A stretch of DNA of 64,000 nt from positions 11,966,001 to 12,030,000 of the forward strand of contig OU015566.1 of assembly GCA_907165135.1 (NCBI GenBank), read 5' to 3'. Shown here one piece after another: positions 16,663 through 59,952 of this stretch. Made by a program: the position numbers and the translations under genes. Each line of letters opens with the position of its first letter. The stretch's first letter is position 1. Below the pieces are notes generated by a model. The model searched no databases. It was not told the origin of the DNA and worked only from the letters and a program-made list of their open reading frames with translations. Source of the DNA: Oikopleura dioica (Eukaryota; Animalia; Chordata).

Positions 16663-16888
16663 AGCATTTATTTCCTTCTGAAAGAAAACTGACCTATCTG
16701 CGCATCAAATTATTGCTCACATTCCTATTCGCATAATTTCTTCTCTACTCTGCACAATTCAAAAAAACCAAAATCACAAAAATACTAATATGAAATTCAG
16801 CTTCATGATTCGCTCCTGTACTAATTAACGCTCTTGATTTACGCATGAATTTTCAAGAATGCAAAGTTGATGGAACCTATAGGAGGAA

Positions 16889-37824: not shown

Positions 37825-37898
37825 GCCTTCTTGGCGCAGTTGGTTAGCGCGTCAGTCTCATAATCTGAAGGTCGTGAGTTCGAGCCTCACAGAGGGCA
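37825..37898 (+). tRNA. tRNA-Met(CAT), elongator type
   Basis: Acceptor stem GCCTTCT/AGAGGGC; A box TGGCGCAGTTGG; anticodon loop CTCATAA; B box GTTCGAGCC; T5 terminator immediately after. Confidence 0.95.
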
Positions 37899-45712: not shown

Positions 45713-45739
45713 CGGTTAGGAATACCTCGTGCGCTAAGC
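45713..45739 (+). pseudogene. 3'-terminal 5S rRNA remnant
   Basis: CGGTTAGGAATACCTCGTGCGCTAAGC plus ATTTT matches the 3' end of the intact 5S gene. Confidence 0.8.
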
Positions 45740-45989
45740 ATTTTGATCCTTATTTTATCAGGAAAAGGGTCATCCTTTTTCCGTTTGGAAGGGATTGTAT
45801 AAATGTCTGATGGAATGAGAAAGCTTCTATATCGTTGAATTCAATTGCCTATGCGAAGAAGCTACCAAACGCGGGCCCCAGAGCATCGAGGAGATTTGGC
45901 GCCCTCCGCCGCGCGCTTTTCTGAAAATAGGCCGAAAATAGGAGCGCGCAGCGACAAAACGACCTCGAAATCAAGCACCCTCTCTCTAC

Positions 45990-46085
45990 ACTCATCCCAT
46001 TTTTGAGTCCGATTTCGATTGTCTAACAGGTAGGAATCGTCTCCATGCCCTCTCTCTCCTATCCCTCTCGCCTCTCACAAACAAA
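45990..46085 (+). ncRNA. Spliced-leader (SL) RNA gene copy 1 (exon 45990-46029; 3' end approximate)
   Basis: 40-nt leader identical in all copies and matching the recalled Oikopleura SL; followed by donor GTAGGA; conserved upstream block. Confidence 0.9.
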
Positions 46086-46133
46086 AATCTTCTAATCAAA
46101 GAAACGTTAGCTAGCCTCAAATGGAAGTTTCAT

Positions 46134-46544
46134 TTATTCGGTTTTATTGACAAAACTGACTGGAACGTTAGTGCCGTACTTTCTATCAGCAGTGAATAAA
46201 AGGTTTTTGCCATTGAATTTGGAGGAGAGTGACTCAAAGTCAACCGTTTTTGGTACAGAAAGGGTTCTCTTCCAGTTGTGTGCTGACTCGATCTTCACTC
46301 CTTCGATGATTTCTGATGTTTTTGATGAGCCAGAGATTTGCAGCTCTCTCTTCGACTCGTCCTTGGTGATTTTGAGGTCTTCCTTCTGCGTCGGAAGCGA
46401 CGCGAGATCAATTCTTGCTGACCAGGTTGTAAGAGTGATCATTTCTTGCGAAATGGAGTAGGGCTGGTAGCGACGATCACGGGATTTGCGCTGGATCGGG
46501 CGGTCGAATTCGGGAGAAAAGGGAAATCCGGCGATTTTAATCAT
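46134..46544 (-). CDS. Small heat-shock protein A (alpha-crystallin domain), intronless, 136 aa
   Basis: WSARIDL...DLKIT...LQISG...WKRTLSVPKTVDFESLSSKFNGKNLLFTA; C-terminal VPV (IXI-type) motif; TATAAAA upstream at 46613-46619. Confidence 0.8.
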   Translation of the reverse strand: MIKIAGFPFSPEFDRPIQRKSRDRRYQPYSISQEMITLTTWSARIDLASLPTQKEDLKITKDESKRELQISGSSKTSEIIEGVKIESAHNWKRTLSVPKTVDFESLSSKFNGKNLLFTADRKYGTNVPVSFVNKTE

Positions 46545-46612
46545 CTCTTGCTTTTTTTGTATCTCTTGGAAAGATTTCCCAGTATGAATGTGCTCTTGCT
46601 GAAACAAGCCCA

Positions 46613-46818
46613 TTTTATACTGTTGAAAACTTGGAGAACATTCGGGAAATCAAGTGTAGAAAATTCCAGAATATAACAGAACATTCCAGAACCAATGGAA
46701 CATTCGAGAAGACTGGTATCTTCACTGTAGATTCTTGAGAAAGAAGATTCCAGAACATTCTACACTGGAAAAAGAACCTGCTAGAAGAGACGACGACAGT
46801 CATCAGTGGCTATAAATA
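46613..46818. promoter_or_regulatory. Bidirectional heat-shock promoter: two TATA boxes flanking at least five HSE arrays
   Basis: nGAAnnTTCnnGAAn at 46635-46649, 46658-46672, 46678-46692, 46697-46711, and a four-unit array at 46742-46761; TATA boxes at 46613-46619 (-) and 46811-46818 (+). Confidence 0.88.
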
Positions 46819-46870
46819 CCGAGCGGGAGATGGCTTTCTCATCACACCAGAGATACAAAAACCAACGAAA

Positions 46871-47302
46871 ATGTTTACTTTTTCCAACGAACACTTCGAA
46901 CCGCTAATGAACCAGGTCTTTTCTGAGCTCGCCCATTCCGCCAACAAGCGTGGAGGATGCCGGCAAACTGCTGAGAAATCGAGCAAGTGGTGCAGCTGCA
47001 TCAACCTTTCTACCATCCCCACCAAGGCCGAGGAACTGCACGTGAAGGTAGACGAGAAGAGCCGCACTCTGACCGTGTCTGGACAGTCTGAAACGGAGTC
47101 TACTCGACGAGACGGATTGAAGATCTTTTCAACTCACGTCTGGACGAAAGAAATTCGAATTCCAGAGGATGTGGAGCTGAAGACGATCGCGTCCAAGTTG
47201 CACGAGAATCAGCTCACTTTCGTCGCCGAACGAGTGCAGAACGAAGAAGACAAGCAACAAGAAATTCCGATCGAGATCGTCGATACTCCTGCTCATGACT
47301 GA
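46871..47302 (+). CDS. Small heat-shock protein B (alpha-crystallin domain), intronless, 143 aa
   Basis: AEELHVKVD...LTVSG...WTKEIRIPEDVELKTIASKLHENQLTFVA; C-terminal IPI motif. Confidence 0.85.
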   Translation: MFTFSNEHFEPLMNQVFSELAHSANKRGGCRQTAEKSSKWCSCINLSTIPTKAEELHVKVDEKSRTLTVSGQSETESTRRDGLKIFSTHVWTKEIRIPEDVELKTIASKLHENQLTFVAERVQNEEDKQQEIPIEIVDTPAHD

Positions 47303-47433
47303 GACAGTCGATTTTCGCATATTCCTTTATTACCTGATTTTACGGAAAACACATAGATACAGTATTAACCTGCAATAAACATAATCCTGAGTCAAAAATT
47401 TGCTATATATGCTGGCTAGAACCGACCTCGTTC

Positions 47434-47551
47434 GCTTAGCGTCATACCGCGTAGAATAAACCAGTTCTCGTCCGATCACTGAAGTCAAACTACGACGGGC
47501 GGGGTTAGTACTTACATGGGTGACCGGTTGGGAATACCTCGTGCGCTAAGC
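47434..47551 (+). rRNA. 5S rRNA
   Basis: 118 nt, colinear with eukaryotic 5S (CATACC...TCTCGTCCGATC...GTTAGTACTT...GGGAATACC); terminal stem GCTTAGCG/CGCTAAGC; TTTT terminator. Confidence 0.95.
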
Positions 47552-47656
47552 ATTTTGACTTTTTTGCATAAAACAATCATTCTTTTTCACGACTAAACTT
47601 TCTTGATCCTCAATTATCATTTAATCGAGCTATAAGAAGCTATTGAAAAGATCCTA

Positions 47657-47817
47657 CAGTGGGTTGCGCAGGTACTGCACCCTTTGTGATTGCGGCGTTG
47701 CTGAACCCTTCGCCCGCGCTTTTTCTATTGTTTCTTTCTAGACTTGCTCAAAGTGATTGCGTGACTGGTGCACCCTTTACCCGCTCTTTAGGGGTGCACT
47801 ACCTGCGCAACCCACTG
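47657..47817. mobile_element. Tc1/mariner-type MITE, 161 bp
   Basis: TIR CAGTGGGTTGCGCAGGTA..TGCACCC; TA on both flanks; absent from the outer 5S-SL spacer. Confidence 0.75.
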
Positions 47818-47976
47818 TAATGTTTGCGACTGGGAAGTATTGATAGTTGAGCTTGCGTAGTGGGCTGCGTGGCACTTGTGAAAAAGCGCCCTCTACCGCG
47901 CGCTTTTCTGAAAACAGGTCGAAAATAGGAGCGCGCAGCGACAAAACGACCTCGAAATCAGGCACCCCTTCTCTTT

Positions 47977-48072
47977 ACTCATCCCATTTTTGAGTCCGAT
48001 TTCGATTGTCTAACAGGTAAGAATCGTCTCCATGCCCTATCTCTCCTATCCGTCTCGCCTCTCACAAATAAG
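47977..48072 (+). ncRNA. SL RNA gene copy 2 (exon 47977-48016; 3' end approximate)
   Basis: Exact 40-nt leader plus GTAAGA donor; same upstream block as copy 1. Confidence 0.92.
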
Positions 48073-48112
48073 AAAATTCTTTCGAAGGAGAACCTCAGAA
48101 CGGTTCTCCTTA

Positions 48113-49316
48113 GACGCGCTTTTTCTAAGGTGGGTTATTTCACCGACTTCTTGATTTTTAACCCTGGAACACCATACCTTTTTGGAATCAGCAGAAAATT
48201 TTAAGAACTTTGACCGTTTAAAATTCTAGAAATCTCCACTTCCGGTCGATTCTAGAGCCGGAAGTTGACGAAATATAGGACTTAGGGTGAAGTGTGACCT
48301 ATCAAATTGATGCTTAGAAGATTTCCTATGATTGAAAAGAAGAATTAACCCCGAGCGCGGCCAAGCCAACCGGTCAAAACAGAAAAAAAATGATAATTTC
48401 AAAAAAAATTTTTGCGAGTCTGGAAATCGTAAAAAATCTAAAAGTGCAGTTTTCTTCAGCTCGTTCAGACGAGTCGAATGGTGTGTCAAACTCTTGATAA
48501 CTCCAAGGATTGAAAATACGTTTCCGGTGGCCATTTTCGTTCTAGAAATGCTAAAATGATGATTGAGCCTGAAAACTGATCCTTATGGTTAGTTTTACTT
48601 TGGGCAAAAAGATATCGGTCAAATATGTAATACAACCTTGATTAATGATTAAAATTCTAAATTTTGTATGTATTTTGTTGTTGCTGCGCCTTCCTAATTT
48701 TCGGTCCCATTTTCATGTGAAAATACAATTTTAGTGATAAGCATGTCATGGTAAGAGATATTATTTTCATTTTTTAGCCCACATAAGAACTAACTTTGAG
48801 GATCAGTTTTCGGGTTCAATCGTCATTCTAGAATTTCTAGATCAAAAACGGCGACCGGAAACATATTTTCCGGTAACCAGCCGGTTTACGGGTCAATCCT
48901 TAGAGTTATCAAGAGCTTGACACACCATTCGACTCGTCTCAACGAGCTGAAGAAAACTGCACTTTTAGATTTTTACGATTTCCAGACCCGCAAAAATTTT
49001 TTTGAAATTATCAAATCATCAATTTATGCTTTTTTCAATATTTTACCGGTCGGTTTGACGATGTTTGGGATTTTTTCTTCTGATATACTGATTATAGGAT
49101 GACTCAAAATCTTCTGAGCGTCAATTTGATAGGTCACACTTCACCCTAAGTCCTATATTTCGTCAACTTCCGGCTCTAGAATCGACCGGAAGTGGAGATT
49201 TCTAGAATTTTAAACGGTCAAAGTTCTTAAAATTTTCTGCTGATTCCAAAAGGTATGGTGTTCCAGGGTTAAAAATCAAGAAGTCGGTGAAATAACCCAC
49301 CTTAGAAAAGCGCGTC
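48113..49316. mobile_element. TIR element family B at the palindrome axis (contains nested MITE C)
   Basis: ~200-bp TIRs starting GACGCGCTTTT; after removing 48392-49012 the interior aligns with the element at 49420-50009. Confidence 0.85.
48392..49012. mobile_element. MITE family C copy 2, nested, 621 bp
   Basis: GATAATTTC...GAAATTATC termini; 4-bp direct repeat AAAT on both flanks; homologous to 33928-34572. Confidence 0.85.
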
Positions 49317-49361
49317 TAAGGAGAACCGTTCTGAGGTTCTCCTTCGAAAGAATTTTCTTAT

Positions 49362-50045
49362 TTGTGAGAGGCGAGACGGATAGGAGAGATAGGGCATGGA
49401 GACGATTCTTACCTGTTAGGACGCGCTTTTTATGGTTGTGGAGGTTTTCTAGCCCACTTGCGCCTTATAAACCCTCGAACATTATACCTTTTTGGAATCA
49501 GGAAGAAATTTTAAGAACATTGACCGTTTTAGTTTCCGAAATTTCCACTTCCGGTCCGATTCTAGAGCTGGAAGTTGCCGAAATTTTTGAGTTTGGGCAA
49601 CTTGTGACCTATCAAATTGATGCTCAGAAGATTTCGAGTCATCTCATCTAAAAATCATTAAGAAAAACCATCCCAACCGCGGTCAAACCGACCGGCAAAA
49701 CTTGTAAAAAGGCATAAATTTGTGATTTTTCTTTCCGTTTTTAGCGGTTGATTTGACCGCTGTCGGCATTTATTCTTCTCTCAGATGATAGGAAATCTTC
49801 TGAGCATCAATTTGATAGGTCACAAGTTGCCCAAACTCAAAATTTTCGTCAACTTCCGGCTCTAGAATCGGACCAGAAGTGGAAATTTTAGAAACTAAAA
49901 CGGTCAAAGTTTTTAAAATTTCCTCCTGATTCCAAAAAGGTATAATGTTCAAGGGTTTATAAGGCGCAAGTGGGCTAGAAAACCTCCACAACCTTAAAAA
50001 AAGCGCGTCTAGACAATCGAAATCGGACTCAAAAATGGGATGAGT
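49362..50045 (-). pseudogene. SL RNA gene copy 3, leader exon split by a TIR element
   Basis: 33 nt of leader at 50013-50045, and the last 7 nt plus donor and intron at 49419 downward; separated by the element at 49420-50009. Confidence 0.9.
49420..50009. mobile_element. TIR element family B copy 2, 590 bp
   Basis: GACGCGCTTTT...AAAAGCGCGTC termini; TAG duplicated at 49417-49419 and 50010-50012. Confidence 0.88.
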
Positions 50046-50204
50046 AAAGAGAAGGGGTGCCTGATTTCGAGGTCGTTTTGTCGCTGCGCGCTCCTATTTT
50101 CGACCTGTTTTCAGAAAAGCGCGCGGTAGAGGGCGCTTTTTCACAAGTGCCACGCAGCCCACTACGCAAGCTCAACTATCAATACTTCCCAGTCGCAAAC
50201 ATTA

Positions 50205-50365
50205 CAGTGGGTTGCGCAGGTAGTGCACCCCTAAAGAGCGGGTAAAGGGTGCACCAGTCACGCAATCACTTTGAGCAAGTCTAGAAAGAAACAATAGAAA
50301 AAGCGCGGGCGAAGGGTTCAGCAACGCCGCAATCACAAAGGGTGCAGTACCTGCGCAACCCACTG
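50205..50365. mobile_element. Mirror copy of the Tc1/mariner-type MITE
   Basis: Reverse complement of 47657-47817, TA flanks. Confidence 0.75.
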
Positions 50366-50470
50366 TAGGATCTTTTCAATAGCTTCTTATAGCTCGATTA
50401 AATGATAATTGAGGATCAAGAAAGTTTAGTCGTGAAAAAGAATGATTGTTTTATGCAAAAAAGTCAAAAT

Positions 50471-50588
50471 GCTTAGCGCACGAGGTATTCCCAACCGGTC
50501 ACCCATGTAAGTACTAACCCCGCCCGTCGTAGTTTGACTTCAGTGATCGGACGAGAACTGGTTTATTCTACGCGGTATGACGCTAAGC
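50471..50588 (-). rRNA. 5S rRNA (mirror copy)
   Basis: Reverse complement of 47434-47551. Confidence 0.95.
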
Positions 50589-50719
50589 GAACGAGGCCGG
50601 TTCTAGCCAGCATATATAGCAAATTTTTGACTCAGGATTATGTTTATTGCAGGTTAATACTGTATCTATGTGTTTTCCGTAAAATCAGGTAATAAAGGAA
50701 TATGCGAAAATCGACTGTC

Positions 50720-51151
50720 TCAGTCATGAGCAGGAGTATCGACGATCTCGATCGGAATTTCTTGTTGCTTGTCTTCTTCGTTCTGCACTCGTTCGGCGAC
50801 GAAAGTGAGCTGATTCTCGTGCAACTTGGACGCGATCGTCTTCAGCTCCACATCCTCTGGAATTCGAATTTCTTTCGTCCAGACGTGAGTTGAAAAGATC
50901 TTCAATCCGTCTCGTCGAGTAGACTCCGTTTCAGACTGTCCAGACACGGTCAGAGTGCGGCTCTTCTCGTCTACCTTCACGTGCAGTTCCTCGGCCTTGG
51001 TGGGGATGGTAGAAAGGTTGATGCAGCTGCACCACTTGCTCGATTTCTCAGCAGATTGGCAGCATCCTCCACGCTTGTTGGCGGGATGGGCGAGCTCAGA
51101 AAAGACCTGGTTCATCAGCGGTTCGAAGTGTTCGTTGGAAAAAGCAAACAT
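50720..51151 (-). CDS. Small heat-shock protein B' (mirror paralogue)
   Basis: 143 aa; differs from B at four N-terminal residues (T3A, S23P, R31C, T33S). Confidence 0.85.
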   Translation of the reverse strand: MFAFSNEHFEPLMNQVFSELAHPANKRGGCCQSAEKSSKWCSCINLSTIPTKAEELHVKVDEKSRTLTVSGQSETESTRRDGLKIFSTHVWTKEIRIPEDVELKTIASKLHENQLTFVAERVQNEEDKQQEIPIEIVDTPAHD

Positions 51152-51203
51152 TTTCGTTGGTTTTTGTATCTCTGGTGTGATGAGAAAGACATCTCCCGCT
51201 CGG

Positions 51204-51395
51204 TATTTATAGCCACTGATGACTGTCGTCGTCTCTTCTAGCAGGTTTTATTTCCAAGTTAGAATGTTCTGGAATTTTCTTTCTGAAGATACCAGTTTTC
51301 TCGAATGTTCGATTTGTTCTGGAATGTTCTGTTATATTCTGGAATATTCTACACTTGATTTCCCGAATGTTCTCCAAGTTTTCAACAGTATAAAA
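51204..51395. promoter_or_regulatory. Mirror bidirectional heat-shock promoter
   Basis: TATA boxes at 51204-51211 (-) and 51389-51395 (+); repeated GAA/TTC pentamers such as AGAATGTTCTGGAATTTTCT and TTCTGGAATGTTCT. Confidence 0.85.
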
Positions 51396-51461
51396 TGGGC
51401 TTGTTTCAGCAAGAGCACATTCAAACTGAGAAATCTTTCCAAGAGATACAAAAAGCAAGAG

Positions 51462-51872
51462 ATGATTAAAATCGCCGGATTTCCCTTTTCTCCCGAATTC
51501 GACCGCCCGTTCCAGCGCAAATCCCGTGATCGTCGCTACCAGCCCTACTCCATTTCGCAAGAAATGATCACTCCTACAACCTGGTCAGCAAGAATTGATC
51601 TCGCGTCGCTTCCGACGCAGAAGAAAGACCTCAAAATCACCAAGGACGAGTCGAAGAGAGAGCTGCAAATCTCTGGCTCATCAAAAACATCAGAAATCAT
51701 CGAAGGAGTGAAGATCGAGTCAGCACACAACTGGAAGAGAACCCTTTCTGTGCCAAAAACGGTTGACTTTGAGTCACTCTCCTCCAAATTCAATGGCAAA
51801 AACCTTTTATTTACTGCTGATAGAAAGTACGGCACTAACGTTCCAGTCAGTTTTGTCAATAAAACCGAATAA
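51462..51872 (+). CDS. Small heat-shock protein A' (mirror paralogue)
   Basis: 136 aa; three visible substitutions versus A (I/F, L/P, E/K). Confidence 0.8.
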   Translation: MIKIAGFPFSPEFDRPFQRKSRDRRYQPYSISQEMITPTTWSARIDLASLPTQKKDLKITKDESKRELQISGSSKTSEIIEGVKIESAHNWKRTLSVPKTVDFESLSSKFNGKNLLFTADRKYGTNVPVSFVNKTE

Positions 51873-51919
51873 ATGAAACTTCCATTTGAGGCTAGCTAAC
51901 GTCTCTTTGATGAGAAGAT

Positions 51920-52015
51920 TTTTGTTCGTGAGAGGCGAGAGGGTAGGAGAGAGAGTGCGTGGAGACGATTCTTACCTGTTAGACAATCGAAATCGGACTC
52001 AAAAATGGGATGAGT
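51920..52015 (-). ncRNA. SL RNA gene copy 4 (exon 51976-52015; 3' end approximate)
   Basis: Exact 40-nt leader plus GTAAGA donor on the minus strand. Confidence 0.92.
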
Positions 52016-52239
52016 GAAGAGAGACGGTGCTTGATTTCGAGGTCGTTTTGTCGCTGCGCGCTCCTATTTTCGGCCTTTTTTCAGAAAAGCGCGCGGCGGA
52101 GGGCGCCAAATCTCCTCGATGCTCTGGGGCCCGCGTTTGGTAGCTTCTTCGCATAGGCAATTGAATTCAACGATATAGAAGCTTTCTCATTCCATCAGAC
52201 ATTTATACAATCCCTTCCAAACGGAAAAATGATCAAAAT

Positions 52240-52274
52240 GCTTAGCGCACAAGGTATTCCGAAACGGTCACCCA
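52240..52274 (-). pseudogene. 3'-terminal 5S rRNA remnant (right edge)
   Basis: Reverse complement TGGGTGACCGTTTCGGAATACCTTGTGCGCTAAGC, a diverged 5S 3' end. Confidence 0.8.
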
Positions 52275-54035: not shown

Positions 54036-54955
54036 ATGAGTTTTGAGCGAAAGGCTATTTCATTGCCGGCGAGGCCAGAGGATTTGATGCCAGTTTATGA
54101 AAGTGCATCATCAATCGAGAGTGAAGGGTCTGACGATGTTTTTGAGTCCTTTGGGGAAGGACATGAGGAAGAGTTCTTCAGGTAATCTCCCTATAAAATG
54201 ACACCGAGAAATAAATTGTGTTAGAGTTCTAGAGCAACGAAAATCTGATGACATAGGAGAATGTTTCAAAGAGGAAGCTAAACCAGTGGCTAAGAAACAA
54301 CTTGATGTAACAATTTTTTCTTCGACGAGCACTTACTATTCTACTGTGTCGAATGATTCAGGTAAAAACGCACTGTCAGCCTTTTATAAACAAAATTCTT
54401 AAGCTCTGAAAACGGCTGATCTCCTGGCTCTTTCAAGCGATCAAGAGCATTTTGAGTTTCAACGAGTTTCAACTAGCACCAACGCTTCTGAACCTGTTCG
54501 GCTACGAACTCTGTCTAAGAGCGCCTTGGATCCAAAGAAACCGCCTGCGAAGCCCGAGAAGAAGGAACTCTTCATTTCGCTCGAGGAACTCGAAAAACTC
54601 ACGCTGGAGGACAACGATGCTGAGGGTGAATTTGAGCAGGGTGCGGAGATATTCAAGCTGAAGACTTGGAATCATGCATCGCTGTGGAAGTGGGACGTAG
54701 ATTGTGACATTTGTGCCATTTGCAGAGTCGTGGTTACGGAACCCTGTCTCAAGGTAAGTTCTTCATGGAAGTAAGAAGTTGCCAGTGATAATTTTTCAGT
54801 GTCAAACGAGTGGTAAAGGCGCCGACGAATGCGCCGTGGTTTGGGGCGAGTGCAACCACAGCTACCACAACTGCTGCATGTCGCGTTGGGTGGCAACGAG
54901 TCCGCGATGTCCGCTCTGCCAGGGGACCTGGGTCGTTCAACGAATTGGCACATAA
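54036..54955 (+). CDS. RNF7: RING-box protein 2 (SAG) with long N-terminal extension
   Basis: FKLKTWNHASLWKWDVDCDICAICRV...VVWGECNHSYHNCCMSRW...CPLCQGTWVVQRIGT*; upstream exons splice in frame. Confidence 0.88.
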
Positions 54956-55181: not shown

Positions 55182-56846
55182 ATGGTTCAGCTCGGGCGGC
55201 GCTCATTGGTTGCCACGGCATTTCTCCGAGGGAAAATCTTTCCCAGAAGAAGGCATTTTGACAATTACCGAGAAAGATTTATGAACATGCTGAGAGCTGC
55301 CAGATCAATAGGGATTATTTTGAAAAGAGATTATTCGCCGAAATATCCAGGAATTGAGAAGTTTCTTGCTGCGTTTCATAGGTAAGGTCTTCTAAAAATA
55401 GAAATAAGGCTTTTTTCATTGATTATTTTCTATTTAATTTTGAAAATTTGATGAGTAATCGAAAGTATGCATAATTCTCTGAGGTCATTATTGTAAATTT
55501 TGTATTTGAAGACCAGAATTCGAGCAAAGACGCGAATATTCTCGAAAACGTCAACAAGATTCTTCTGCACTTGGCTCCTCTACGAATTCCAGAGTTGAAA
55601 AATGAATCGAAAAATCACGTAGAAAGCCTACTCTACCTCAGAGAACTCAACGAAAATGTCGCGAAAGAACAAGACCCGGAGATGAAAGAATTGCTTCGGG
55701 AAGAAATCAAAGAATCGGAAGAGCAAATAAGTGAGATTGAAGAAGAAGTTTTCGACATTTTGGCCGAATATGAAACTGAAGAAGCCGAAAAGGCGAATTT
55801 TGTCGTTGAAGCTGGAGCAGGAGGGGATGAAGCTGGAATCTTCGCTAGGAAGGTTTCATTTTGGAACGGTCAGAATTGAAAAAACGGTATTTTGCAGTTT
55901 ATCTTTTGCGAACTTGAAGCTCAAGAGGCGCTACTTTCTTTCATAAAGTCAAATTAATTATTGATTGATGATGATCGCGAATTTATGAATAATAAACAAG
56001 TTCGTTCCAAATTGTCCCAATTCCTTCTGAAACCGGTGTCAGAGAACTCTTCGATCACTACCTCTCCTTTTTCGATTTCATGAACTGGCACTATGAAGTA
56101 GTAAATCGAGATGAAGAAAACGGGATGCTCAATGAGGGGCACATTGTTGTTTCGGGGCTGAATGCGTTCAATAGAAATCTCGCCGAGGCGGGGGTTCACC
56201 GCGTCGCACGCATTCCTCAAAACTCGACAAAGCTTCATACGAGCACTTGCGCCGTCAAAGTAACGCCGATTTTGGAAAGGAGGCTGATCGAGATTCCAGA
56301 GAGGGAGTTGGAGATTTCCTCTTGCAGAGGGTCTGGAAAAGGCGGACAGGTAAACATAGTATTTTGACTAATTCTAACGTCATTTTTTTCCAGAAAATCA
56401 ACACTGTTCATTCCCGAGCGGTCGTAAAACACATTCCATCCGGCATCACCACCACTTACTTCGAGCCTGGCAGAAACAACACCCTAGCCGGCAACACTGA
56501 AAAAGCAATTGAAGAGCTTCGCTCAATCCTTCAAGCTCGTCAAGACGCTGAATTCGAGCGTGAATTCCTCGGTTTTCAGAATTCAATGAACACTAATTTC
56601 GAGCGCGGCGAGCGAATACGAAATTATTCATGGAGCAATAACAATGTTACTGACTACCGGACAAAGCGGAAATTCAATTTGCAGAAGTATTTTTCGAATT
56701 CTGGTTTTGAGATGATGGAAGAGATTCAAGGGGAATATTCGCACATGAAAAATTGTGAAAGAAATGTCGCCTTGTTTGAAAAATATGACAAGGATGTCTC
56801 CCAAGAGCTATTTAAAAAGTTCCTTTCTGATTTTAAACCTTTCTAG
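55182..56846 (+). CDS. MTRF1L: Mitochondrial class I peptide chain release factor
   Basis: Presequence; EAGAGGDEAGIFA; GVHRVARIP..LHTST; GSGKGGQ|KINT; RGERIRNYSW..VTDYR. Confidence 0.85.
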
Positions 56847-57882: not shown

Positions 57883-59952
57883 ATGCAGCTTCCAGTTAAA
57901 CTTTTGAAAGAAGGCACTGACACCTCCCAGGGTATTCCCCAGATCGTCTCCAACATCAATGCCTGTCAGGTCATCGGTGAGGCGATCAAAACGACTCTTG
58001 GGCCCCGAGGCATGGACAAAATGATCATCGATGCTAGATCAAAGGTAATCAATTATCAGAAGTACTCTTTTCTATTTTCTCCTTCAGACTCACATTTCCA
58101 ACGATGGTGCCACCATCCTCCAGCTCCTCGACATCGTCCACCCTGCAGCAAAGACCCTCGTCGACATCGCCAAGTCACAAGATGCCGAGATCGGCGATGG
58201 AACGACCTCTGTCACTCTCCTTGCCTGTGAATTCATGACGATGATGAAGCGATTCATCGAAGATACCGTGCACCCACAGTTGATCGTCCGCGCCTTGAGA
58301 GAGTCGGTCAACCTGGCCATCAAACGACTTGAAGAAATCGCTGTCAACCCAATGAAGAGTGGTACTCCCGAGGACAGACGATCAACCTTGATCAAGTGCG
58401 CCCAGACAGCTATGAGCTCAAAGGTATTGTATTTTTAATTTAACAGGGATCACCTGAATATTTTAGCTCGTCGCTGCCAACAAAGAGTTCTTCTCCGAAA
58501 TGGTCGTTTCTGCTGTCCAGTCCATTGATCAGGATATCATGCCGCTAGAGATGATCGGTATCAAGAAGGTCCCCGGTGGTGCTTTGGAGGATTCGCGACT
58601 TATCAACGGTGTTGCCTTCAAAAAGACTTTCAGGTAAAACTCTTGAAAATTGGCCCATTCAGCAAGGGACTTTCAGCTACGCTGGATTTGAAATGCAGAA
58701 GAAAGAGTACCAAAACCCACTGATCGCCCTCCTGAACGTCGAACTCGAACTCAAGGCGGAGAAAGAGAACGCGGAGGTGCGCGTTACAAACGTCAAGGAC
58801 TACCAGGATGTCGTTGATGCCGAGTGGGACATCCTCTACGAAAAGCTCGAGTGCTGCTACAAATCTGGCGCCAAGGTCGTCCTCTCCAAGCTTCCCATTG
58901 GCGACGTTGCTACACAGTATTTCGCTGACCGAGGAATGTTCTGCGCCGGTCGAGTAGCTGACGAAGATCTCAAGAGAACTATGAAGGCTTGCGGTGGTGC
59001 CATTGTGGTAATTTTCTGAATTAGTGATTTTGGTTTTCAAATGTTTTTAGTCATCATGTTTGAATCTGAGCGAAAATCAGCTTGGAACATGCAGCACGTT
59101 CACTGAGACCCAGGTCGGCAGCGAGCGATTCAACTTCTTTGAGGGCTGCCCCAACGCCAAGACTTGCACCATGCTCCTCCGAGGTGGCGCCGAGCAGTTT
59201 TTGGAAGAAACAGAGCGATCCCTTCACGACGCGATTATGATTGTTCGACGAGCGAGCAAGTCTGATAGCGTAAGTTTTCTTCATCCCGCCAAGCCTTTAA
59301 CAAAATCTTAGATCGTTGCTGGAGGTGGAGCTATTGAAATGGAGCTCTCCAGAACTCTCAGAGAACATTCCCGAACCATCAAAGGAAAAGGACAGATGTT
59401 AGTGAATGCATACGCAAAGGCTCTCGAGGTAAGAAAAAAACGATAAGTTGGGGTCGACGTACACATTCATTATTTAGATCATCCCACAGCAGCTGTGCGA
59501 TAATGCCGGTTTCGATTCTACTGATCTTCTTAATAAGCTTCGTAAAGGCACTTTGGTTTTAAAAGCAATCAATTTTACTCAAAGATTCTTTGAAGGACTG
59601 TTTTTAAAACCTGATAAAAGCGCATGCTGATGGTCAAATCTGGGCTGGTGTTGACGTAAATGAAGAGGGCATTTCCAACAACTACGAAAAGTTCGTTTGG
59701 GAGCCAGCTCTTGTCAAAAAGAACGCTTTAATGGTAAGCCAATTTTAAGGATGAAGTGGGAAGGATGGAGTCTATTCTAATTTGATTTCGCTTTTGATCC
59801 GCTTTCTAAATCCGCCCTCGTTTAATTATATCTTATTTCACAAGGGGAGGAGTCGATTCTTTATTAATTTATTCTTTAAGGCTGCCACAGAAGCTGCATG
59901 CGCCGTCCTCTCCGTAGACTGGACCATCAAAGTGCCAAAAGCCACTCAATAA
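57883..59952 (+). CDS. CCT7: T-complex protein 1 subunit eta
   Basis: [22 protein letters not shown]; TLGPRGMDK; [10 protein letters not shown]; [11 protein letters not shown]; RYNFF-like [10 protein letters not shown]; [11 protein letters not shown]. Confidence 0.96.

Follow-up and report, generated by a model that had tools for sequence, protein, structure and literature searches.

A small heat-shock gene pair as a probable passenger of the dispersed, mirror-paired 5S/spliced-leader repeat family of Oikopleura dioica

Genes for 5S rRNA are said, in work by Drouin & de Sa from 1995, to occur linked to other repeated gene families. For the chordate Oikopleura dioica, PMC8008620 (Bliznina et al. 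2021, citing Ganot et al. 2004, MCB 24:7795) states that 5S genes are frequently associated with a gene for spliced-leader (SL) RNA, together with which they form inverted repeats, and it gives more than 40 copies as first described and 27 for the Okinawa assembly OKI2018_I69, 22 of these in inverted orientation. In Caenorhabditis elegans, divergent pairs of small heat-shock protein (sHSP) genes of the hsp-16 family share a promoter with heat-shock elements (HSEs), and they form a palindromic duplicate with near-identical arms, i.e. an ancient duplication that has been kept alike by gene conversion (Russnak & Candido 1985; Zhao et al. 2007, PMC1803023). The locus described here is a palindrome of 6.56 kb (45713-52274) with 5S, SL and sHSP genes on both arms, located in a stretch of 64,000 nucleotides (the window, to which all positions without a contig name refer) from contig C4 (= chr1; 11966001-12030000) of OKI2018_I69 (64.3 Mb, 19 scaffolds). 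It is quite probably a member of the dispersed, mirror-paired 5S/SL family of O. dioica, the unit of which is here a composite of ~2.0 kb, with sHSPa pointing to the left of an HSE promoter and sHSPb, 5S and SL following one another to the right of it. In this composite the sHSP genes are regarded as passengers of the repeat unit, because the package recurs and is not a one-off.

The recurrence follows from a genome-wide search with sHSPb, sHSPa, 5S and the SL unit, after which the stitched parts of the loci were annotated. Besides the window, the package was found at six further loci on contig C1, in varying completeness (Table 1), while sHSPa, the HSE region and the upstream SL are collinear at five loci, i.e. 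the window and four of those on C1. Intact sHSPb stands in front of eight 5S genes, and partial or pseudogene copies precede four more; with remnants counted, roughly one in three of the listed 5S genes has sHSPb sequence in front of it. Throughout the Okinawa loci, the gap between the sHSPb stop codon and the 5S gene is 132-135 bp. Decayed but still collinear traces of the sHSPb coding sequence are also present in two plain palindromes outside C1: upstream of the 5S on both arms at C2:5.591 Mb (nt 130-183, E 3e-9), and upstream of the 5S at C5:14.003 Mb (nt 348-432, E 4e-14). A further 5S gene, which precedes the module at C1:14.49 Mb, has immediately upstream of it a pseudogene of sHSPb with in-frame stops (C1:14486260-14486900), an indication that the sHSP genes belong to the tandem unit itself. 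The copied unit physically includes the sHSP genes.

The package is also found outside this genome. Contigs from the Joint Genome Institute (JGI) metagenomes were scanned with an alignment of sHSPb relatives, which yielded five loci (L041-L045). On L041 (1312 bp), which belongs to another lineage, sHSPb (190-618, 81% amino-acid identity) is followed by 5S (871-989) and then by SL (1175-1311), at which point the contig ends; its 5S gene (97 bits with Rfam) is identical in sequence to that of the window, and the gap between sHSPb and 5S is ~250 bp. The synonymous divergence (dS) of the sHSP genes is 0.016-0.022 between the arms of the window and 0.12-0.25 between loci, and it exceeds 1.5 between L041 and the sHSPb of the window, so that the linkage of sHSP, 5S and SL predates a deep split. 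In the sHSPb tree, the eight copies from Okinawa group together in a single clade, apart from those of the metagenomes. The linkage is therefore old, and the present copies are young or homogenised. An earlier first-pass annotation of the window had put forward the idea that protein genes travel as passengers of the RNA-gene repeat, and had named as the opposite outcome that no other unit carries protein genes and that sHSP orthologues lack flanking 5S-SL units. The idea is borne out by the same module at six further C1 loci, by the sHSPb remnants on C2 and C5 and by the metagenome contig of another lineage, and in place of the opposite outcome the package recurs both in the genome and in L041. 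A one-off capture of the genes was rejected, since the module recurs at several loci.

The recurrence also bears on whether the palindrome could be a one-off rearrangement or an artefact of assembly (a head-to-head join made from two haplotypes or from a chimeric long read). The divergence of the arms (1-4%) does fall within the range of heterozygosity, and palindromes can be nanopore artefacts, but with the module at seven loci and on an independent metagenome contig such an origin is extremely unlikely. Moreover, the arms differ by a 590-bp miniature inverted-repeat transposable element (MITE), by an indel of ~25 nt and by the points at which their 5S genes are truncated, and PMC8008620, which cites earlier work on O. 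dioica, describes inverted 5S-SL pairs both from this species and from this assembly. With the MITE and indels differing between the arms, and the pattern being family-wide, an assembly artefact was rejected.

Arm A reads, from its outer edge inwards, 5S remnant, SL1, sHSPa on the reverse strand, HSE promoter, sHSPb on the forward strand, 5S and SL2 (Table 1). The two arms (45713-48112 and 49317-52274) are 96-100% identical, block by block, and each holds ~1.3 tandem units, of which the outer one is truncated; the truncated 5S and SL1 would then be the tail of a preceding unit. The remnant at 45713-45746 forms the outer edge of arm A, with a left flank unrelated to arm B. In fact, the outer flanks of the two arms are unrelated, the 5S remnant of arm A beginning at 5S position ~92 and that of arm B at ~84, and arm A has ~25 extra nt following its remnant compared to arm B. 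The outer 5S copies in the window are remnants of 28-36 nt only. Since the elements have the same order in both arms, the tandem arrangement is older than the mirror duplication or, at the least, older than the latest homogenisation of that duplication, and with this addition the first-pass view that the tandem 5S-SL arrangement is older than the inversion can be kept. Every element named in that annotation (5S remnant, SL copy 1, sHSP pair, intact 5S, SL copy 2) is present in the sequence, although the coordinates of the SL exons and the start of sHSPa had to be corrected. The block that it had seen upstream of both SL1 and SL2 is likewise present, but is not peculiar to these two genes, being conserved family-wide in all 34 SL units examined.

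Table 1. Features of the palindrome (positions in the window) and further loci on contig C1 with the sHSP-5S-SL package
Feature	Position	Strand	Description
5S rRNA 3' remnant	45713..45746	+	97% over 34 nt to 47525-47558; 5S positions ~92-119 and T-run
SL RNA gene 1 (SL1)	45897..46082	+	upstream block -93 to -1; leader exon 45990-46029; GT donor at 46030; conserved to ~+90
sHSPa	46134..46544	-	open reading frame (ORF), 136 aa, start MIKIAG; 3' end converges on SL1
Bidirectional putative heat-shock promoter	46545..46870	.	six perfect trimeric HSEs, TATA-like box on each side
sHSPb	46871..47302	+	143 aa, Pfam HSP20
Intact 5S rRNA gene	47434..47552	+	Rfam 97 bits, full length; T-run downstream
165-bp foldback element	47655..47819	.	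28-nt terminal inverted repeats, in enlarged 5S-SL2 spacer
SL RNA gene 2 (SL2)	47884..48069	+	upstream block and leader exon 47977-48016
Palindrome centre	48113..49316	.	composite foldback MITE made of two nested elements
Mirror SL gene 2' (SL2')	49317..50136	-	leader exon interrupted by 590-bp foldback MITE 49420-50009
Mirror 5S rRNA gene	50470..50588	-	Rfam 97 bits, full length
Mirror sHSPb'	50720..51151	-	97% amino-acid identity, 6 nt differences
Mirror sHSPa'	51462..51872	+	98% amino-acid identity
Mirror SL gene 1'	51923..52108	-	intact leader exon 51976-52015
Mirror 5S remnant	52239..52274	-	5S positions ~84-119; outer edge of arm B
Further locus	C1:13.434 Mb		full module, full outer 5S, plus mirror SL<5S arm
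Further locus	C1:13.736 Mb		full module, full outer 5S, plus mirror SL<5S arm
Further locus	C1:13.334 Mb		SL fragment, both sHSP genes, 5S, SL; DNA examined shows no mirror arm
Further locus	C1:14.489 Mb		sHSPa pseudogene; right arm keeps sHSPb residues 99-143
Further locus	C1:12.658 Mb		palindrome, sHSPb on both arms, no sHSPa
Further locus	C1:13.821 Mb		decayed sHSPb residues 92-139, both arms

With Rfam model RF00001 (cut-off 38 bits), a full-length 5S gene is recognised on each arm, and the inner pair (47434-50588) is one 5S-SL inverted repeat of the published type. As such inverted pairs are published for the species, the inversion in the window represents the normal state of the family rather than a local accident; matches across the genome amount to at least 47 for 5S and at least 40 for SL, on contigs C1, C2, C4 and C5, mostly as inverted pairs. 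SL1 and SL2, spaced 1987 bp apart, share 195 nt at 92% identity and have an identical 40-nt leader followed by GT, while the conserved SL region extends from -93 to ~+90 in the units examined (34, of which 32 are distinct). The distance between the 5S remnant and SL1 is 250 bp, compared to a family range of 231-272 bp. That between the intact 5S and SL2 is 424 bp, which is due to an insertion of 255 bp (47565-47819) that includes the 165-bp foldback element; this enlargement of the spacer is common to both arms, and typical units are without these positions (query 132-386). The 165-bp hairpin element itself is found in both arms (47655-47819 and 50203-50367), with a 97% identical copy at C5:11610236-11610400. 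At gathering thresholds, Rfam gave no SL, U6 or other small nuclear RNA (snRNA) family in the window, and the minimum free energy (MFE) z-scores for the secondary structure of the SL RNA (-0.57 to +0.94) are not significant. A TATA-like box lies ~27 bp upstream of the 5S gene. With a T-run downstream of 5S, the conserved 93-bp block upstream of SL and, for the two sHSP genes, a common HSE-rich bidirectional promoter and a poly(A) signal each, the four kinds of genes give the impression of separate transcription units arranged one directly after the other.

It had been proposed in the first-pass annotation that the 5S-SL units form an array under concerted evolution, whereby homogenisation of the tandem members would drag the embedded genes along. 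The mirror arms are indeed alike (96-100% here, and identical at several loci), but a locus never carries more than two tandem copies among the loci examined, and SL2 is 94-97% identical to its closest copies at other loci, versus 92% to its tandem partner SL1. In the tree, tandem neighbours are not grouped, and the branching of the outer SL copies follows neither their position nor their locus. Homogenisation between tandem units was rejected on the basis of these SL identities and of the tree, and array-type concerted evolution as a whole seems very improbable. The arms of the window, on the other hand, are sisters (path 0.013), with other loci ~0.08 away, and near-identity that exists only between mirror arms can be arm-to-arm conversion or simply recent duplication.

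The partners of the arms at two sister loci on C1 deserve mention in this respect. The right arm at C1:13.43 Mb has the outer-left unit as its partner, with 96.6% identity over 813 nt (330 nt of flank included), compared to 88% to the inner-left unit, while the partner of the right arm at C1:13.73 Mb is the inner-left unit. Conversion could bring about such a change of partner, which would be in line with array-type homogenisation, but the pattern is equally explained by full palindromes, like that of the window, that lost the inner part of their right arm through recombination between direct 5S-SL repeats, at different breakpoints; arm-to-arm conversion from different donors gives the same picture. 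The two origins suggested in the first-pass annotation, i.e. capture of the sHSP pair into an existing array or duplication of the 5S-SL unit around the pair, are both less economical than a composite unit of ~2.0 kb and were set aside.

The mirror axis is held by the composite foldback MITE of 1.2 kb at 48113-49316, the ends of which are abutted by both arms. The outer family of this composite is a foldback MITE of ~590 bp, with at least 40 dispersed copies in the genome, which fills the spacer between the two SL genes in at least 10 of the 13 palindromes examined. The flanks of the centre (TTA to the left, TAA to the right) mirror each other and do not form a direct duplication. The 590-bp element at 49420-50009, by comparison, has terminal repeats beginning GACGCGCTTTTT and a direct CTA target duplication, and it is present in arm B only, which means that it arrived after the palindrome had been formed; because it sits inside the leader exon, this SL2' copy is dead. 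That the mirror step itself was a fold-back at the central MITE is a tentative suggestion, for which the odds are somewhat against rather than in favour.

As for the protein genes, sHSPb matches Pfam HSP20 (PF00011; E 5e-9, 36.6 bits versus a cut-off of 20.8) and has a weak match in the PDB to C. elegans SIP-1 (E 0.006). sHSPa scores 14.7 bits with the same Pfam family, which is under the cut-off, and aligns with sHSPb over the crystallin domain at 37% identity (BLASTP, E 2e-18); it is probably a divergent member with an alpha-crystallin domain. The genome contains eight intact copies of sHSPb and five intact paralogues of sHSPa, and 74 relatives of sHSPb were collected, many of them from marine metatranscriptome catalogues. 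Between the two genes, trimeric nGAAnnTTCnnGAAn elements are clustered next to the TATA box: six perfect HSEs lie at 46636-46760 (125 bp of the 326-bp intergenic region) and six in the mirror copy, compared to three in the rest of the window (~63 kb). The latter are found at 55534-55546, 59363-59375 and 16847-16859. At the loci examined, HSE clusters occur only where the sHSP genes are intact. The ratio of non-synonymous to synonymous divergence (dN/dS) of sHSPb is 0.07-0.38 between Okinawa loci (at dS 0.12-0.25) and 0.05-0.09 against the other lineage, and that of sHSPa is ~0.3. Judging from the six perfect HSEs and the dN/dS of 0.07-0.38, the sHSP genes look functional.

Polyadenylation signals are present at both genes: in sHSPa an AATAAA overlaps the stop codon, and in sHSPb it lies at 47377-47382, within the 132 bp between the stop codon and the start of the 5S gene, a gap that is filled by the 3' untranslated region (UTR) and a TATA-like box. 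In another Oikopleura lineage (L042 58-525(-) and 822-1250(+); P0039, P0045, P0054), both divergent genes carry an sHSPb-like crystallin domain, while one gene of the pair has an N-terminus of the sHSPa type (MKITGFPFS...); in the Okinawa pair the two are only 37% identical. This suggests conversion between the members of an L042-type pair, or a chimeric gene. Two ORFs on C5 (13098518-13098763 and 13105433-13105702, reverse strand; 335-368 aa frames) show weak similarity (30-35%) to the crystallin domain and flank a different 5S-SL palindrome, at C5:13101852-13104470.

The linkage could also be functional, in that selection keeps the sHSP genes beside the highly transcribed 5S and SL genes (through open chromatin or insulators that would allow fast induction, or because the HSEs modulate SL and 5S under stress), and it would then be adaptive instead of hitch-hiking. 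The linkage persists across lineages at saturated dS, the spacing between sHSPb and 5S is held at 132-135 bp within the genome, and the sHSP genes are under purifying selection, all of which could be read in this way. However, many 5S-SL palindromes exist without HSEs and without sHSP genes, sHSPb is decaying at several loci, the gap on L041 is ~250 bp instead of 132, and relatives of sHSPb also occur without 5S (L043-L045). In addition, the 3' UTR with its poly(A) signal and the TATA-like box before the 5S gene suffice to account fully for the conserved gap. Functional coupling is therefore improbable, albeit less so than homogenisation of an array. A dependence of the 5S-SL units on HSEs was rejected, given the plain palindromes without HSEs.

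Several observations count against the proposed composite unit with its passengers, or against parts of it. Around five plain palindromes gave no sHSPb remnant at the sensitivity of blastn, so that 5S-SL units may also spread without sHSP genes. On L043-L045, relatives of sHSPb occur without a neighbouring 5S, which means that the linkage is not universal (L042 breaks off too early for a judgement). The age of the insertion in the window and the case for arm-to-arm conversion are based on one genome and one environmental contig of 1.3 kb. Fold-back at the MITE, finally, is based on geometry and on one flank base (TTA versus mirrored TAA), and it is equally possible that the MITE was inherited with the palindrome or that it prefers such centres.

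With these points taken into account, the composite unit with its passenger genes still seems the most suitable description, and a route by which it came about can be proposed. The package would have spread by duplication at the DNA level, first in tandem, then in mirror orientation and then to other sites, with the sHSP genes being carried along; the mirror step may have been the fold-back at the central foldback MITE. Copies would later have been lost by decay or by deletion between direct 5S-SL repeats, and such loss would explain both the plain 5S-SL palindromes with sHSPb remnants and the three-unit loci. A more far-reaching version, in which the 5S-SL family of Oikopleura goes back to the composite package as its propagating unit and this package spreads between chromosomes as ready-made palindromes seeded by MITE fold-back, is rather unlikely, but if true it would constitute a DNA-level route, without retrotransposition, that co-amplifies an RNA polymerase III gene, an snRNA-type gene and RNA polymerase II stress genes, and that could tune the dosage of heat-shock genes between ocean lineages.

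The result is structural and evolutionary in nature. Its 5S-SL part has already been published, while linkage to sHSP genes was not found in the literature searched (the combination of sHSP and Oikopleura returned nothing relevant, the founding paper of Ganot et al. 2004 lying beyond that search). What it adds is that a pair of protein-coding stress genes can form a regular component of a dispersed RNA-gene repeat, in a package that is seen both gained and lost. Since sHSPb or its remnants precede roughly one third of the listed 5S genes, the turnover of the 5S-SL palindromes partly determines, in this genome, how many copies of the heat-shock family there are. The locus is moreover a compact natural system in which to study the origin and upkeep of kb-sized palindromes in an extremely rearranged chordate genome, given the full palindrome in the window with its central MITE, and the three-unit and truncated derivatives at other loci.

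Two further features of the window lie outside the palindrome. Rfam identifies a tRNA gene at 37825-37898 (+; 65.8 bits), which is probably a tRNA-Met in view of its anticodon loop (CUCAUAA). To the right of the palindrome, an ORF fragment at 54526-54774 contains a RING-box-like motif (WNHASLWKWDVDCDICAICR) and is probably an exon of an RBX1-type gene.

Compared with the systems described before, the window is closest to the 5S/SL inverted repeats of O. dioica itself (PMC8008620), with which it shares a 5S gene followed by an SL gene with a 40-nt leader on the same strand, as well as convergent, near-identical pairs on several chromosomes. The mirror region of the window additionally takes in a divergent sHSP pair, a second SL and a truncated 5S, while protein genes are not mentioned in the literature searched, including that source. 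The ampliconic palindromes of the human Y (Rozen et al. 2003, after PMC1803023) likewise have near-identical arms with protein genes around a short unique or foldback spacer, but on a Mb scale instead of kb, and whereas conversion is the theme there, it is not demonstrated in the window, where recent duplication fits equally. The hsp-16 locus of C. elegans resembles the window in its divergent sHSP pair, its HSE promoter and its palindrome, and is regarded as an analogue without any claim of homology; unlike the window, it has no 5S or SL in the palindrome and is a single locus rather than a dispersed family. Finally, L-type arrangements, in which 5S genes are joined to rDNA, histone, snRNA or SL genes (PMC3692318 being one example), are similar in that 5S travels, and is co-amplified, with unrelated genes. 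However, these linked systems are long head-to-tail arrays of housekeeping genes, whereas in the window the partner is a putatively stress-inducible sHSP pair, and the units are arranged as dispersed palindromes with at most two tandem copies.

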